Sequence record: NC_017972.1
Reading direction: 5' to 3' (one strand)
DNA length: 64,000 nucleotides
Translations under genes and position numbers: made by a program
The notes under the pieces: model-generated
Databases searched by the model: none
Seen by the model: only the letters and a program-made list of their open reading frames with translations
Told to the model about the DNA's origin: nothing
In this document: one piece after another, positions 1 to 12,127 of the stretch
Numbering within the stretch: the stretch's first letter is position 1
How the letters are laid out: each line of letters starts with the position of its first letter

Positions 1-50
1 CTAGGGGTCTTGGTTTGTGGCTTGCGTTTAGTGCTGGTGGCGTATGGCAT
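1..50 (-). CDS. 5' end of an early gene running off the window (MPYATSTKRKPQTKTP...)
   Basis: ATG at 50-48, preceded by the same TTAGAGGAAGTTT RBS leader as the other early genes; frame open to the edge. Confidence 0.7.
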   Translation of the reverse strand, partial: MPYATSTKRKPQTKTP

Positions 51-140
51 GGAAACTTCCTCTAATCCGTGACTGTTAAAGTATCAGGCAGGCTTCGCCC
101 GATTCGTCTGCAAGATACCAAACGGCCCATAGCCTGTCAA
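51..140 (-). promoter_or_regulatory. sigma70-type early promoter P1 with 5' hairpin and RBS leader
   Basis: TTGACA (140-135), 17 nt, TATCTT (117-112); hairpin tcgggc..gcctga; RBS TTAGAGGAAG. Confidence 0.85.
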
Positions 141-160
141 CCCCCGGCCACCACACAGCC

Positions 161-222
161 TGCGCAGCCTCTATACGCGTGCGCAGCCTCTATACGCGTG
201 CGCAGCCTCTATACGCGTGCGC
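161..222. repeat. 3 perfect tandem copies of 19-nt TGCGCAGCCTCTATACGCG plus a 5-nt partial copy
   Basis: units 161-179, 180-198, 199-217 read directly from the sequence. Confidence 0.95.
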
Positions 223-266
223 GGGCGCGTGTACGCGTGTACGGGCGTGTAAGAGCCAGAAACGAC

Positions 267-300
267 AAAGCCCCTAACCGGCGCAAACCGGAGGGGCTTT
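267..300 (-). terminator. intrinsic terminator hairpin
   Basis: aaagcccct-ccgg...ccgg-aggggcttt stem just after the stop of 304..717. Confidence 0.7.
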
Positions 301-3050: not shown

Positions 3051-4442
3051 TTAGTGCAAGGCCTCAACCGCGTTGAATTGAGCCGCAACCAGTTTGCCGA
3101 CGAAGGTAGGCTGGCCGTCCAGCATTGCCACTTGTGCGAACGGTACAGCGGTTTTGCCGTCGCTCAGCACTGCCACGCGTACATCATCGCGGCGAACTAC
3201 GCGCAGAACGCCAACCACTTTAGAGCGCGCACCTTTCACCAGACGCAGGCCGTTTTCTTTGAGGTCGGCAATGGTCGGGGTCGCTTCGACTTTGTGCTGT
3301 TTTGCTTCGGCCTTGTCGAAATTGGCGCGTGGCGCTTTGGTTTCGGCTGGCTTGCTTGCAGCAGTCTTACGGGTGTTTTCAGCAGGCTTTGCAGCCGGGG
3401 TGTTTTCAGCAACTTCGGCCACGCGGAATTTGCCTTTTACTTCGACAATCGAATCCAGCGGAATGCGCTTACCGGATTGAGTCACAACCGAACGCACGCC
3501 AGTGGTTTTGTTGCGCTGGATTGCTTCGACTACTTCGTGCTTGCGGCCATCAATAAACCCCTCGGCGCGCAGGCGGGTAGTGCTTACTTCGGTTTTTGCA
3601 GCGGCTTTTGCAACAGGCGCAGCGGCAGCTGGTTTTGCGTCAGCTTTTGCAGCCGGGGTTTTTTCGCCTTTGACCATACGGCCTTTGCGGTTGTCACGAA
3701 TGTGCGCAACAAAGTGTTTACCGGCGCTGGTGGCGTTTTCCAGTGCGCGAACATCGCTCAGCGAAACAGCCTCATACGCCCAGCGTGCGCCATCGTTGAA
3801 GGTGGCGAACAGCGTTTGAGTGTTGCGGTCATACTCGGCGGCTTTCAGCAGGGCAGACGGTTTGATTTTCAGTACGCGAATCGGGTACTGGCGGATTGCT
3901 TCTTTTTCAACCGACAGTTTTTCTTCTTTGACGGCTGGCGCTTTCGGTGCAACGGTTTCGCCTTTCTTGGCGTAGTTGGCAATGGCCGATTCCTTCACGC
4001 GGAAAGTGCCGCGATTGTTGCGCTCGATATCGCCCAGTGCGATACGCAGGCCGGAAGCGGTTACAGCTTCGCGGGTATCGGTCGCTTTGTTGCGGGAAAT
4101 GCGCACGACGGTTTCTTTTGCGCGGCCCAGCAGCACGATTTGATCGCGCAGGTCAGCGGCTTTGATTTCCGGCGCGGCATTTTCTTTAGGCGCGGAAACT
4201 TTTGCAGCCGGGGTTTTGGTTTCGGTTGCTTTCGGAGCTGGCGCCGGGGCGGCTTCGGCCTGCTTGGCTTTGAACTCTTTGTGCCAGTGTTTCAGATCGC
4301 GCAGGGTAACGCCGTTGCCCAAATCGGAAGCCAAACGGAACAGCGGGGCGCCGGTGGCTTTCTTGTGTTCGCGGTTGGCGGTTTCAATAGCTTCAACAGC
4401 AGCAACCAGCATGGCTTGGGCGGTGTAGGATACGGTGGTCAT
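3051..4442 (-). CDS. KTSC-domain, Lys/Ala/Pro-rich (histone H1/AlgP-like) protein
   Basis: SALLKAAEYDRNTQTLFATFNDGARWAYEAV...SAGKHFVAHIR matches the KTSC pattern; repeated KTPAAK/KPAA linkers. Confidence 0.75.
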   Translation of the reverse strand: MTTVSYTAQAMLVAAVEAIETANREHKKATGAPLFRLASDLGNGVTLRDLKHWHKEFKAKQAEAAPAPAPKATETKTPAAKVSAPKENAAPEIKAADLRDQIVLLGRAKETVVRISRNKATDTREAVTASGLRIALGDIERNNRGTFRVKESAIANYAKKGETVAPKAPAVKEEKLSVEKEAIRQYPIRVLKIKPSALLKAAEYDRNTQTLFATFNDGARWAYEAVSLSDVRALENATSAGKHFVAHIRDNRKGRMVKGEKTPAAKADAKPAAAAPVAKAAAKTEVSTTRLRAEGFIDGRKHEVVEAIQRNKTTGVRSVVTQSGKRIPLDSIVEVKGKFRVAEVAENTPAAKPAENTRKTAASKPAETKAPRANFDKAEAKQHKVEATPTIADLKENGLRLVKGARSKVVGVLRVVRRDDVRVAVLSDGKTAVPFAQVAMLDGQPTFVGKLVAAQFNAVEALH

Positions 4443-4533
4443 GGGAAACTTCCTCTAAAGTGTGATCGTCTTTGTTTCGGGCAGGCTTTGCCCGAGTGAC
4501 TGCATATTGGCTTATGGTGGCCGGGGGTGTCAA
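4443..4533 (-). promoter_or_regulatory. sigma70-type early promoter P2 with 5' hairpin and RBS leader
   Basis: TTGACA (4533-4528), 18 nt, CAATAT; perfect tcgggca/tgcccga hairpin; TTAGAGGAAGTTT. Confidence 0.75.
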
Positions 4534-4584
4534 TAGGCTAGTACCAAAAAAGTGACCGCCCCGGCTAAAAACTTTGTTCGGGCC

Positions 4585-5900: not shown

Positions 5901-6251
5901 TTAGTGCTCCTGCTTTGGGATCGAATCGAAATGGCCGGGGCCGCTGGTGAACGGACGCATGTACAAATTGTGCTGGCGCGCATAATCAATCTCACGCGGC
6001 GAATAGGTGCGCTCTTCATAATCTTGACCGAACGCGATAGAGATACGAACCGTAACCGAGGCATCGCTATTAACGCGGAACAGCTGTTTGCCGAATACAG
6101 GAAAACCCAAAACGGCGCGTTGCGTTTTTGCGTCAAGGCGGATTTCTTTATCCTCCAAATCCGAAAGCGCAATGGTTTCAAAGAACGAAAGGATACCGGC
6201 GCTCTTTGGCATTGCCCAATCTGCGATGGCGGCGAACTGAATACGGCTCAT
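5901..6251 (-). CDS. hypothetical early protein
   Basis: first gene after P3. Confidence 0.8.
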   Translation of the reverse strand: MSRIQFAAIADWAMPKSAGILSFFETIALSDLEDKEIRLDAKTQRAVLGFPVFGKQLFRVNSDASVTVRISIAFGQDYEERTYSPREIDYARQHNLYMRPFTSGPGHFDSIPKQEH

Positions 6252-6342
6252 GCTGAAACTTCCCTAATGGCGTGACTGTAAAAGTATCGGGCACACTCTG
6301 CCCGTCTGCCCATAGAGTCTCAAAACGCGGGGGCCATGTCAA
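6252..6342 (-). promoter_or_regulatory. sigma70-type early promoter P3 with 5' hairpin and RBS leader
   Basis: TTGACA (6342-6337), 17 nt, GACTCT with upstream TG; cgggca/tgcccg hairpin; TTAGGGAAGTTT. Confidence 0.75.
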
Positions 6343-6425
6343 CGGGCCAGCACAGAAAGTTGGCGCGGCTTTCTATACGCGGGCGCGCATACGCGTAGGC
6401 CAGAAAGTCAGATTCCGGGCACAAG

Positions 6426-6447
6426 AAAGCCCGCGCATGGCGGGCTT
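6426..6447 (-). terminator. intrinsic terminator hairpin
   Basis: aagcccgc/gcgggctt stem followed by TTTCTTGT. Confidence 0.65.
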
Positions 6448-6475
6448 ATCTCGGGGCGCTAGGTAGGTAGCGGTT

Positions 6476-9474: not shown

Positions 9475-9855
9475 TCAGAAGTTTTTGATTGCGCGGTCGC
9501 GTGGGTTGGTGGTGCAGCGCACAATGGCGCCGTCCTTGTAGTAAACGGTCATGTTACCGTCGAGGCCCCACTGGTCAAAAATGAACAGGTCGAGAACGGC
9601 GCGGCCATCATCGGTCAATTCCACGCCTTTGCGGAATTCTGCCCAACCGTGCATGTCGTGCAGGTCGGTATCTGCCCAGTCTTCGGTTTGTGCAACGCGA
9701 GCCACGTTAAGCGACGTTGGCGTTTCGGAATCGGTCAGGCTTACGCGGGAACCGAGTTCGATTCGGCGCAGACCGGAGCAGCTACGTTTAGCAGCGGCGC
9801 GGATTACTTTGCACTCTTCGGCGGTTGGCTTCCAGACGTTGGCTTTCTTGCTCAT
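9475..9855 (-). CDS. hypothetical early protein
   Basis: first gene after P4. Confidence 0.8.
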   Translation of the reverse strand: MSKKANVWKPTAEECKVIRAAAKRSCSGLRRIELGSRVSLTDSETPTSLNVARVAQTEDWADTDLHDMHGWAEFRKGVELTDDGRAVLDLFIFDQWGLDGNMTVYYKDGAIVRCTTNPRDRAIKNF

Positions 9856-9948
9856 GGCTTAAACTTCCCTAATGGCGTGACTGTAATGTTTCCGGGCAAG
9901 CTTCGCCCGATTCGCCAGCAGGTTATCAATCTGGCGTCCAGCTGTCAA
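9856..9948 (-). promoter_or_regulatory. sigma70-type early promoter P4 with 5' hairpin and RBS leader
   Basis: TTGACA (9948-9943), 17 nt, TAACCT; cgggc/gcccg hairpin; CAGTCACGCCATTAGGGAAGTTT identical to P3. Confidence 0.85.
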
Positions 9949-10035
9949 CAGGCAAGCAAACGCGGGCCGTGCTGCCTTCTATACGCGGGCGCGTGTACGT
10001 GCGCGTATAAGCAAAGCGCTGGCGCCAGAAACGAC

Positions 10036-10060
10036 AAAGCCCCGCACAAGGCGAGGCTTT
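10036..10060 (-). terminator. intrinsic terminator hairpin
   Basis: aaagcctcgc/gcggggcttt stem followed by GTCGTTTCT, the same tail as at 267. Confidence 0.7.
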
Positions 10061-10063
10061 TGG

Positions 10064-10603
10064 TTAGGCGGCTTCTTTGGAAAGTTCGACAGAGACGATT
10101 GGGCGCGTGGGATAGTAGAAGTCCCGAACGTGCTTTTCGATTCTGATTAGTTTGCAGTACAGGCGCAGGTGGGAACCCTTTTCAAACTTGACGACAAAAA
10201 GTTTTTCGTCTGGCAGCGCCCCTTTCCTAAATTTCAGGTCGTCAACAATTCGTTGGAAAGCTTTTGCCTGTTCCAGTTTGTCAAACCAAAAACCTTGCGT
10301 CGTATCATGCGGCGTCATTACTTGCACAACTGGCGTGACGCGGGAAATTTTTCCGTACATGAATGCCGCCTGCTCGGCCAGCTCTTCAATCGGCTGCGCG
10401 TCCAGCTTCGCAAAGAATAATTCAACCATGTGCAGGATTTCGTAGTAATCGGGATCGTGCTTGCGGTTTTCGATTGCCTGAATCCGGGCAGGCTCGATCA
10501 TCAGATATTTTGCCAAGTCGGATTGGCTAACGTTGAGGCGTTTGCGCCATTGCTGCATCTGGCGGGCGGTGATTCTGCGCATTTTATTTTTCCCTAATCG
10601 CAA
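10064..10603 (-). CDS. XRE-family HTH protein (start probably 10582)
   Basis: MQQWRKRLNVSQSDLAKYLMIEPARIQAIENRK is a typical HTH_3 pattern. Confidence 0.7.
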   Translation of the reverse strand: MRLGKNKMRRITARQMQQWRKRLNVSQSDLAKYLMIEPARIQAIENRKHDPDYYEILHMVELFFAKLDAQPIEELAEQAAFMYGKISRVTPVVQVMTPHDTTQGFWFDKLEQAKAFQRIVDDLKFRKGALPDEKLFVVKFEKGSHLRLYCKLIRIEKHVRDFYYPTRPIVSVELSKEAA

Positions 10604-11542: not shown

Positions 11543-11632
11543 CGGAAAACTTCCCTAAAAGTGTGAGTGCTTTTGTTCCGGGCACAGCAAGGCCCGGACT
11601 CGCATTATGCCGCCCTAGCCCGCGTCTGTCAA
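11543..11632 (-). promoter_or_regulatory. sigma70-type early promoter P5 with 5' hairpin and RBS leader
   Basis: TTGACA (11632-11627), 17 nt, CATAAT; tccgggc/gcccgga hairpin; TTAGGGAAGTTT. Confidence 0.85.
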
Positions 11633-12127
11633 GCCTGCCTGCGCGCTGGCTAGACGGGCCTCGGTGGCCGGTGGGTGGCCGTTGTAGCCTTCGACGCTGC
11701 GGGTCCACGCATCGGGCATTAATTGCACTTCATCACGACCGGCCAGCACGGCGCGTACCTTCGGCGTTTCGCGGCGGCTAACAGGGATAATCAAACCGTT
11801 AATAAGCGTGATTTGATAGAGGCCGGTGGGCAAACGTTTCATATGGGCAATGGCGGAGGCGCGCACCAATGCCTTGCGGTGAACGCGAATGAAATCAGCA
11901 AACTTTTCTTCGGTTGCAAATGTTGCCAACGCTTTGTCCGTCATCGGGTGGAAGTCGGAAGGCTGCGCATTAAGCAAATGGAATTCGACGTACTTGTTAT
12001 CGCTGACCAGCGCCACAATATCATCGCTGTTGAATTGCGCTACCCGTTTGCCACAAACGATTGTGTAATCAAACGGGGAATCTTCTGCGGCGGTTTCTTC
12101 TACGGTTTCAATTGCGGCGCTGTCCAT
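11615..12127 (-). CDS. stand-alone LytTR DNA-binding domain protein
   Basis: DDIVALVSDNKYVEFH...FIRVHRKALVR...YQITLINGLIIPVSRR is a classic LytTR signature; no receiver domain. Confidence 0.85.
   Translation of the reverse strand: MDSAAIETVEETAAEDSPFDYTIVCGKRVAQFNSDDIVALVSDNKYVEFHLLNAQPSDFHPMTDKALATFATEEKFADFIRVHRKALVRASAIAHMKRLPTGLYQITLINGLIIPVSRRETPKVRAVLAGRDEVQLMPDAWTRSVEGYNGHPPATEARLASAQAGLTDAG

Follow-up and report, generated by a model that had tools for sequence, protein, structure and literature searches.

Alternating purine-pyrimidine tracts upstream of predicted early promoters in Pseudomonas phage Lu11 and its relatives: a possible supercoil-responsive, Z-prone element

The window, by which we mean the whole stretch of 64,000 nucleotides that was analysed, matches bases 1-64000 of Pseudomonas phage Lu11 letter for letter. 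Lu11 is a jumbo phage that infects P. putida and has a genome of 280,538 bp. Every annotated Lu11 gene in the first 62 kb and in the last 18 kb is carried by the minus strand, so that the cassette promoters discussed here are minus-strand promoters, and 'upstream' means towards higher coordinates. At three loci, Pa, Pb and Pc, the window contains copies of one repeated minus-strand cassette, in which a terminator hairpin with a T-rich tail is followed by a short linker, a tract of alternating purines and pyrimidines (RY), a spacer, a TTGACA -35 box, a TG-extended -10 box, a leader, and a start codon. The T-rich tail ends in TTTCTGGC, which is conserved in relatives, and the distance between the TATA end of the tract and the -35 box is exactly 31 nt at all three loci, with different letters in the spacer. 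In every cassette the leader contains the conserved hairpin CGGGC..GCCCG, and directly ahead of the start codon stands the motif TCAC(5-10 nt)GGAAGTT. Phage HRDY3 and relatives from IMG/VR conserve this leader as well, and no Rfam family matches it. The features are as follows, with Lu11 coordinates.

1-105, minus strand: Pa leader (hairpin, then TCAC..GGAAGTT), followed by codons 1-17 of an unannotated 48-aa gene
112-140, minus strand: predicted promoter Pa (TTGACA, 17 nt, TATCTT, TG ahead of the -10; 10/12 consensus matches)
161-251, minus strand: tract of cassette Pa, whole element (19-bp tandem repeat and 42-bp near-perfect alternating tract)
161-222, minus strand: Pa tandem repeat (perfect, 19-bp unit, 3.3 copies)
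210-251, minus strand: Pa alternating tract (42 bp, two in-phase single-base breaks)
262-300, minus strand: terminator hairpin and T-tract upstream of tract Pa (tail ends in TTTCTGGC)
4440-4560, minus strand: cassette Pf, without tract (same promoter and leader family)
6337-6342, minus strand: -35 box of Pb, TTGACA (31 nt from the tract)
6374-6397, minus strand: tract of cassette Pb (24 bp, one in-phase break)
6426-6448, minus strand: terminator hairpin upstream of tract Pb
9922-9948, minus strand: promoter Pc, annotated in the record (TTGACA at 9943-9948, extended -10; 31 nt from the tract)
9980-10009, minus strand: tract of cassette Pc (30 bp, one in-phase break; includes the 21-bp run 9989-10009)
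10036-10060, minus strand: terminator after gp021, upstream of tract Pc (consensus scan)
10064-10582, minus strand: gp021, HTH_3 (XRE-type) regulator, a candidate reader of the tract if this is a protein site
11560-11632, minus strand: cassette Pg, without tract, inside the end of gp024
11615-12127, minus strand: gp024, LytTR-domain regulator, second candidate reader
52-105, 4444-4504, 6255-6304, 9861-9920 and 11566-11600, minus strand: cassette leaders of the window (hairpin and TCAC..GGAAGTT)
117386-117432, ~243.9 kb and 276369-276437: cassette leaders in the rest of Lu11 (hairpin and TCAC..GGAAGTT)

A consensus scan recovered promoter Pa and the Pc terminator, and the Pc promoter is annotated in the Lu11 record. 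The earlier note had called the three promoters strong and early, a description taken from their consensus match only; a search of sequencing runs yielded no RNA run of Lu11, and both the promoters and their strength are predictions. The Lu11 record has one 'regulatory' feature, a putative middle/late promoter, that covers 107991-280538, evidently a coordinate error. The unannotated 48-aa gene behind the Pa leader starts at position 51 and, passing the arbitrary point at which the record begins, continues at Lu11 280538-280443. It encodes a product that is conserved in HRDY3 and in the relatives G001 and G002 described below (48-50 aa, with a common ...VSDAARRFRK... motif).

The alternating blocks that the earlier note had placed between a terminator and each of the three promoters are real, and at all three loci the tract sits between a terminator hairpin and the TTGACA -35 box. 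The tracts are longer than first described, 24-42 bp with at most two in-phase breaks, and the last two blocks, although present, had been placed one base off (6382-6396 and 9988-10008). Perfect RY runs are found at 172-185, 191-204, 210-223, 225-243, 6383-6397 and 9989-10009. The last of these (21 bp) is the longest perfect run of the Lu11 genome, and 225-243 (19 bp) is joint second. Breaks are single bases, and the phase of the tract is kept across them, as across a single out-of-alternation C.

Lu11 has approximately eight such cassettes, and the full tract is found in only three. It is absent from the cassettes at ~4.5, 11.6, and 276.4 kb, and the cassette at 243.9 kb has a tract remnant of 9-10 bp. 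In the degenerate cassette at 117.3 kb, two transversions interrupt a Pb-type tract, and a usable start codon is lacking. The annotated gp156 (Lu11 117256-117462) lies entirely on this cassette, comprising tract, -35 box and leader with no properly placed start codon, and probably does not represent a real gene. The cassette is perhaps in decay, or it might drive a non-coding RNA.

Relatives were found by tblastn with gp021 and gp024 and by means of the leader motif, the latter retrieving cassettes in Pseudomonas phage HRDY3 (313,683 bp; major capsid protein 85% identical to that of Lu11), in several IMG/VR contigs of 307-314 kb, and in metagenome contigs. Scans of viral contigs for close relatives of the gp021 and gp024 proteins gave no match, and an exact 15-mer scan of viral contigs gave 19 single matches in unrelated contigs, which is chance level. 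HRDY3 carries homologues of both gp021 and gp024 in synteny with Lu11, and no other homologue of gp021 was found in the phage collection. G001 and G002 are two of the IMG/VR contigs, used whole; together with Lu11 and HRDY3 they form a set of four complete genomes. Four orthologous groups of cassettes can be told apart: in Lu11, Pc belongs to group A, Pb to group B and Pa to group C, whilst of group D only a remnant is present. The leader motif was not found in PaBG, NCTB, Dickeya JA29, and Erwinia Y3 (capsid identity 47-61%), nor were RY runs of at least 17 bp beyond chance, and on the genomes compared the element is confined to the Lu11/HRDY3 clade.

Two arrangements in the relatives concern the cassette as a whole. 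In group B, the tract doubles as the 3' end of the upstream ORF, with the stop codon in the TATAG or TATAA end of the tract, giving a protein tail ...RARTRTHV or ...RARTRTRV (HRDY3 270135-270158, corresponding to L024 16422-16445, and G002 129442-129464). In L118 (metagenome contig RCMZ01007306.1), the upstream half of Pc, comprising terminator, tract and spacer, is fused at the -35 box to the downstream half of Pb. Comparison of this junction with window positions 6245-6460 and 9850-10070 indicates that ~3.6 kb was lost (gp011-gp020), and judging from it the cassettes serve as recombination substrates.

The number of RY runs expected under Markov models was obtained by an exact transfer-matrix calculation. 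For Lu11 alone, the excess is modest, with three runs of at least 19 bp versus 0.4-1.2 expected. Over the four complete genomes, run counts match the expectation up to ~18 bp, and runs of at least 20 bp number 1, 3, 2, and 3 versus 0.2-0.6 expected per genome. The longest runs among them are 32 and 30 bp, and a run of at least 32 bp is expected 0.0001-0.0002 times per genome. All nine runs of at least 20 bp lie 89-153 nt upstream of a cassette leader motif and in the correct orientation, which chance cannot explain.

The tracts share a common layout, in which a pyrimidine run of the CTTCTT type on the 5' side is followed by a TA or TATA cap, a CG-rich alternating core of 14-30 bp, a second TA cap, and a purine run of the GAGG type. 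This GAGG/GAAGG flank is conserved and does not alternate. In the 19 tracts, 50 of the 64 TA units are terminal and lie beside CG units; TA enrichment had been considered as evidence against Z-DNA, and this was dropped since these units are terminal caps. Without the terminal TA units, the core consists of 59% CG, 27% CA/TG, and 8% TA, compared to 33%, 50%, and 16% in background alternating runs of the same genomes. The length of the tract varies from 14 to 42 bp within orthologous groups, and the perfect runs, of 14-32 bp and up to 42 bp with in-phase breaks, have the length (at least ~12 bp) and the richness in CG and CA/TG expected of a Z-DNA site. Group A tracts stand ~22 nt from the -35 box; for groups B and C this gap is 29-31 nt, and for group D 47-49 nt. 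The A+T-rich UP element, at -40 to -60, was rejected as an identity for the tracts, which are CG-rich and lie further upstream.

There are also features at the level of letters. Counting both strands, the 10-mer CACGCGTATA is nearly confined to the tracts, usually at a tract end: 3/3 of its occurrences in Lu11, 3/3 in HRDY3, 1/1 in G001, and 3/4 in G002 fall inside tracts (0.2-0.3 expected). CGCGTA is present in 18 of the 19 tracts, and the tracts have a mild 2-bp and 6-bp periodicity. The spacing of the end motifs varies, 6-14 bp or more, and in 17/19 tracts dyad symmetry does not rise above that of shuffles that preserve the alternation, the exceptions being two HRDY3 tracts. A palindromic operator or cruciform was therefore rejected as a conserved property, symmetry exceeding the shuffles in only 2/19 tracts; inverted repeats with the 9-11 bp arms of a cruciform occur only in HRDY3 groups C and D.

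The earlier note had argued from the Lu11 loci that the letters differ and the alternation is kept, and orthologous cassettes from Lu11, HRDY3, and uncultured relatives bear this out. Total divergence per site is the same in tracts and flanks (0.29 versus 0.28), and the ratio of transitions to transversions is 2.5:1 in the tracts versus 0.66:1 in the flanks. In pairwise comparisons of the HRDY3-like clade, the tracts show 0.207 transitions and 0.083 transversions per site, and the flanks 0.112 and 0.170, respectively. Of the 58 variable tract columns, 36 contain transitions only and 22 contain transversions, versus 67 and 188 of the 255 columns in the downstream non-coding flank, an excess of transition-only columns with a Fisher p of 4e-7; the flanks used in these comparisons themselves include promoter and leader. 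Aligning two alternating sequences in phase yields transitions by construction, so that this test partly restates that alternation is universal among the tracts. An independent argument is the persistence of alternation at four positions in lineages that differ at 28% of their flank sites. According to these alignments, it is the purine or pyrimidine class that is conserved, and the letters are conserved no better than those of the flanks, except for the tract ends, with the 10-mer and the GAGG flank. This points to selection on the shape of the DNA, possibly Z-DNA, rather than to an ordinary protein-binding sequence.

Closer relatives, for which the alignment is unambiguous, can be compared with Lu11 directly. 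In L111, the Pc tract is identical and the adjacent linker has been rewritten, the Pb tract of L113 differs by two transitions only, and the Pc tract of L118 by one transition, with a background ratio of 48:42 transitions to transversions in these close comparisons. A relative that is ~90% identical, assembled from sequencing run X5, has 15 other letters in place of positions 180-228, and its tract Pa is, by reconstruction, a perfect alternating run of 38 bp. Position 249 is changed from G to A, a transition, in all four sequencing runs that were compared with the window. The number of 19-bp units differs, with three in Lu11 and one, of other letters, in the X5 contigs, and contigs of run X1 skip 38 bp. 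The latter was not counted as evidence, since it may be a collapse of the 19-bp repeat in the k=31 assembly.

The B-Z transition, as treated in the SIBZ/Z-Hunt class of stress-induced B-Z sites, was modelled using the published SIBZ energies with 5 kcal/mol per junction in a single-run model (PMC3024258). The best predicted segments of the Lu11 genome are 213-250 (rank 1, critical superhelix density -0.034) and 9983-10006 (rank 2, -0.037), and 6378-6395 in tract Pb is rank 4 (-0.040). The tracts rank 1-4 in HRDY3, 1, 3, 4, and 5 in G001, and 1, 2, 3, and 5 in G002. The whole-genome scoring suggested in the earlier note thus places the tracts at or near the most Z-prone sites of their genomes, yet the model does not make them strong Z formers. 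Their critical superhelix density of -0.034 to -0.040 is that of (CG)6-7 and is also reached, at -0.038 on average, by the top-scoring segment of random genomes of matched composition (Markov-3). Judged by the comparison with shuffled DNA that the earlier note had proposed, this is a borderline outcome, and in this model the energy score by itself is not above chance. In a 3-kb plasmid, the predicted critical density of the tracts is -0.044 to -0.048. The flip would need more tension than the usual unconstrained level in cells and would depend on extra tension made by transcription.

The Z-prone character that the earlier note had given the tracts holds in rank and in their anatomy, and it is the absolute score that is ordinary. 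Crystallographic and fluorescence work found bases extruded at B-Z junctions only where an A.T pair adjoins a stable Z dinucleotide (PMC6212838). The terminal TA caps beside CG provide precisely this preferred junction arrangement. C5 methylation of cytosine would favour Z-DNA, and no cytosine-5 methyltransferase gene was found in Lu11. A ThyA-family gene was examined as a possible cytosine modifier and rejected, as it is an ordinary thymidylate synthase. Its product (Lu11 173863-175062, minus strand, ~400 aa) aligns with the family over two separate stretches, suggestive of an insertion or N-terminal extension.

We favour, tentatively and with a probability somewhat short of even, the reading that the tracts are a supercoil-responsive, Z-prone structural cis-element of a subset of the early cassettes, in which alternation is selected and not the letters. 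The element is placed 20-50 nt upstream of the -35 box. Negative supercoils would accumulate behind RNA polymerase departing from these promoters, whereupon the core would turn from right-handed B-DNA into left-handed Z-DNA, the A.T caps forming the junctions. Depending on the length of the tract, this flip would take up ~3-7 helical turns, and it would clamp or sense the local superhelical tension at the promoter. The anatomy, the conservation, the transition bias, and the ranks in the model are observed, and from there we infer the flip and any effect on transcription. What favours a structural reading is the combination of in-phase alternation with free letters, a variable length, a variable distance to the promoter, no conserved symmetry, and a CG-rich core with A.T caps. 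The variation in length and -35 distance between groups also fits poorly with a stereospecific contact with RNA polymerase. Moreover, in the one clearly degenerate cassette, at 117 kb, the tract was broken by transversions. Several points run counter to Z-DNA. The cassettes are arranged in tandem, and the negative supercoils could be offset by positive ones from the operon upstream. In each genome the majority of cassettes do without a tract, and there are the letter-level features, the near-exclusive 10-mer and the conserved GAGG-type flank. To our knowledge, no natural Z-DNA control element has been established in phages. That the tracts are the first natural and evolutionarily maintained phage B-Z switches, buffering or gating early promoters, possibly with a protein that reads the flipped or deformable form, goes further, and we consider it rather unlikely.

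Alternatively, the tracts may be arrays of sites for a sequence-reading protein, most likely the phage-encoded gp021 or gp024, with a motif of approximately CACGCGTATA plus the GAGG flank, in either orientation, that happens to alternate. Such a protein would tolerate transitions better than transversions, and its binding would switch the early promoters off or on during infection. We regard this as a serious possibility, slightly less likely than the structural reading. The confinement of CACGCGTATA to the tracts, the frequency of CGCGTA, and the conserved non-alternating flank all favour a protein site, and so do the three exact 19-bp units of Pa, which include the non-alternating GAGGC. The -35 distance is constant within each orthologous group and is 31 nt at all three Lu11 loci despite differing spacer letters, close relatives keep the tract while rewriting the adjacent linker, and, among related jumbo phages, homologues of gp021 and gp024 are found only in the clade that bears the cassettes. 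However, unlike in a normal operator, the letters of the tracts diverge as much as the flanks, half-sites are spaced by 6, 10, or 14 bp without dyad symmetry above the shuffles, tract length varies three-fold, and the -35 distance differs between groups by non-helical amounts. An activator also seems unnecessary with a consensus -35 box and an extended -10 box. A borrowed host operator was rejected, since the exact 20-mer palindrome is absent from the genomes of 185,579 bacterial species but for a single chance match in an unrelated MAG. A protein site stays close to the structural reading because the energy score is modest, the genes are oriented in tandem, and the tracts have a 10-mer of their own, the conserved GAGG flank and, in Pa, exact 19-bp units.

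The tract might also have no function of its own and ride on a mobile or recombining terminator-promoter cassette, slippage and gene conversion of short units keeping the alternation intact. The L118 recombinant, the 8-bp and 19-bp tandem duplications in Pa, with a copy number that may vary in a relative, and the mild periodicity would agree with this, but neutral decay would break a run of 20-30 bp, whereas alternation was kept at four orthologous positions while the non-coding flanks came to differ, mostly by transversions. In addition, the clearly degenerate cassette did gain transversions, and we therefore consider hitch-hiking improbable. Less probable still, to the point of being slight, is a site for a type II topoisomerase, host gyrase or phage gp148, that removes transcription supercoils, or a deformable stretch that aids wrapping of upstream DNA on RNA polymerase. 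The tracts do lie upstream of promoters, Lu11 encodes a topoisomerase II (gp148), every second step of an alternating tract is a flexible pyrimidine-purine step, and eukaryotic topoisomerase II prefers alternating purine-pyrimidine repeats. The motif of bacterial gyrase, on the other hand, is not an alternating repeat, and neither topoisomerase action nor wrapping needs strict in-phase alternation.

The nearest parallels to a Z-prone element are engineered. Rahmouni and Wells reportedly placed (CG)n/(TG)n Z-DNA inserts upstream of E. coli plasmid promoters, where these reported transcription-driven supercoiling. The Lu11-clade tracts likewise lie upstream of a promoter, where negative supercoils collect, and are predicted to flip within plasmid superhelix densities, but they are natural, conserved, of mixed sequence, and capped by TA. 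In length and strength they fall short of the inserts that flip in vivo, their own flip being predicted. Z-DNA-forming promoter elements are known from eukaryotic genes such as CSF1 and c-myc, and are thought to store or sense negative supercoiling. They resemble the tracts in being Z-prone near transcription starts, but reside in chromatin and have Z-binding proteins, and we know of no Z-alpha-type protein in the Lu11-clade phages. In E. coli, the ilvPG promoter has a supercoil-destabilised upstream element (the SIDD mechanism), an A+T-rich melting site under the control of IHF. As with the tracts, a stress-responsive DNA structure upstream would compete with or feed promoter opening, although the phage element is an alternating tract and not an IHF-controlled melting site. 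Upstream operators of phage early promoters are similarly conserved elements at a set distance upstream of several early promoters, but the tracts conserve alternation instead of dyad symmetry or letters, and have no host counterpart. The cassette, as distinct from the tract, is reminiscent of the PeSL (promoter-early stem-loop) cassettes of T4-type phages, modules of a terminator and an early promoter that act as recombination substrates. The cassettes of the Lu11 clade are likewise repeated modules of a terminator and a sigma-70-type promoter between early genes, with ~8 copies in Lu11, at least nine in relatives, and the recombinant L118. PeSLs, however, belong to another phage lineage and have neither an alternating tract nor a common structured leader.

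The earlier note knew of no description of such tracts in these phages, and full-text literature searches, whose coverage did not extend to the Lu11 genome announcement, likewise found neither an earlier description of the element nor a paper on HRDY3. It has long been asked whether Z-DNA is under selection for any role in bacteria or in bacterial viruses, and nearly all evidence comes from inserted (CG)n repeats. The paper on PaBG mentions promoters only in passing. Z-prone sequences are enriched at eukaryotic promoters (PMC2677879). With Z-prone tracts near promoters thus known from eukaryotes and from engineered plasmids, what would be new is a conserved natural family of them at phage early promoters, with evolutionary evidence that alternation is selected. 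This single phage clade offers ~20 natural copies of the tract, in which evolution has changed the letters and kept the alternation, and which are small, clonable, and available with a culturable, non-pathogenic host, P. putida. If the tracts are protein sites instead, they would define the operator of an early-gene regulator in a poorly studied group of jumbo phages.
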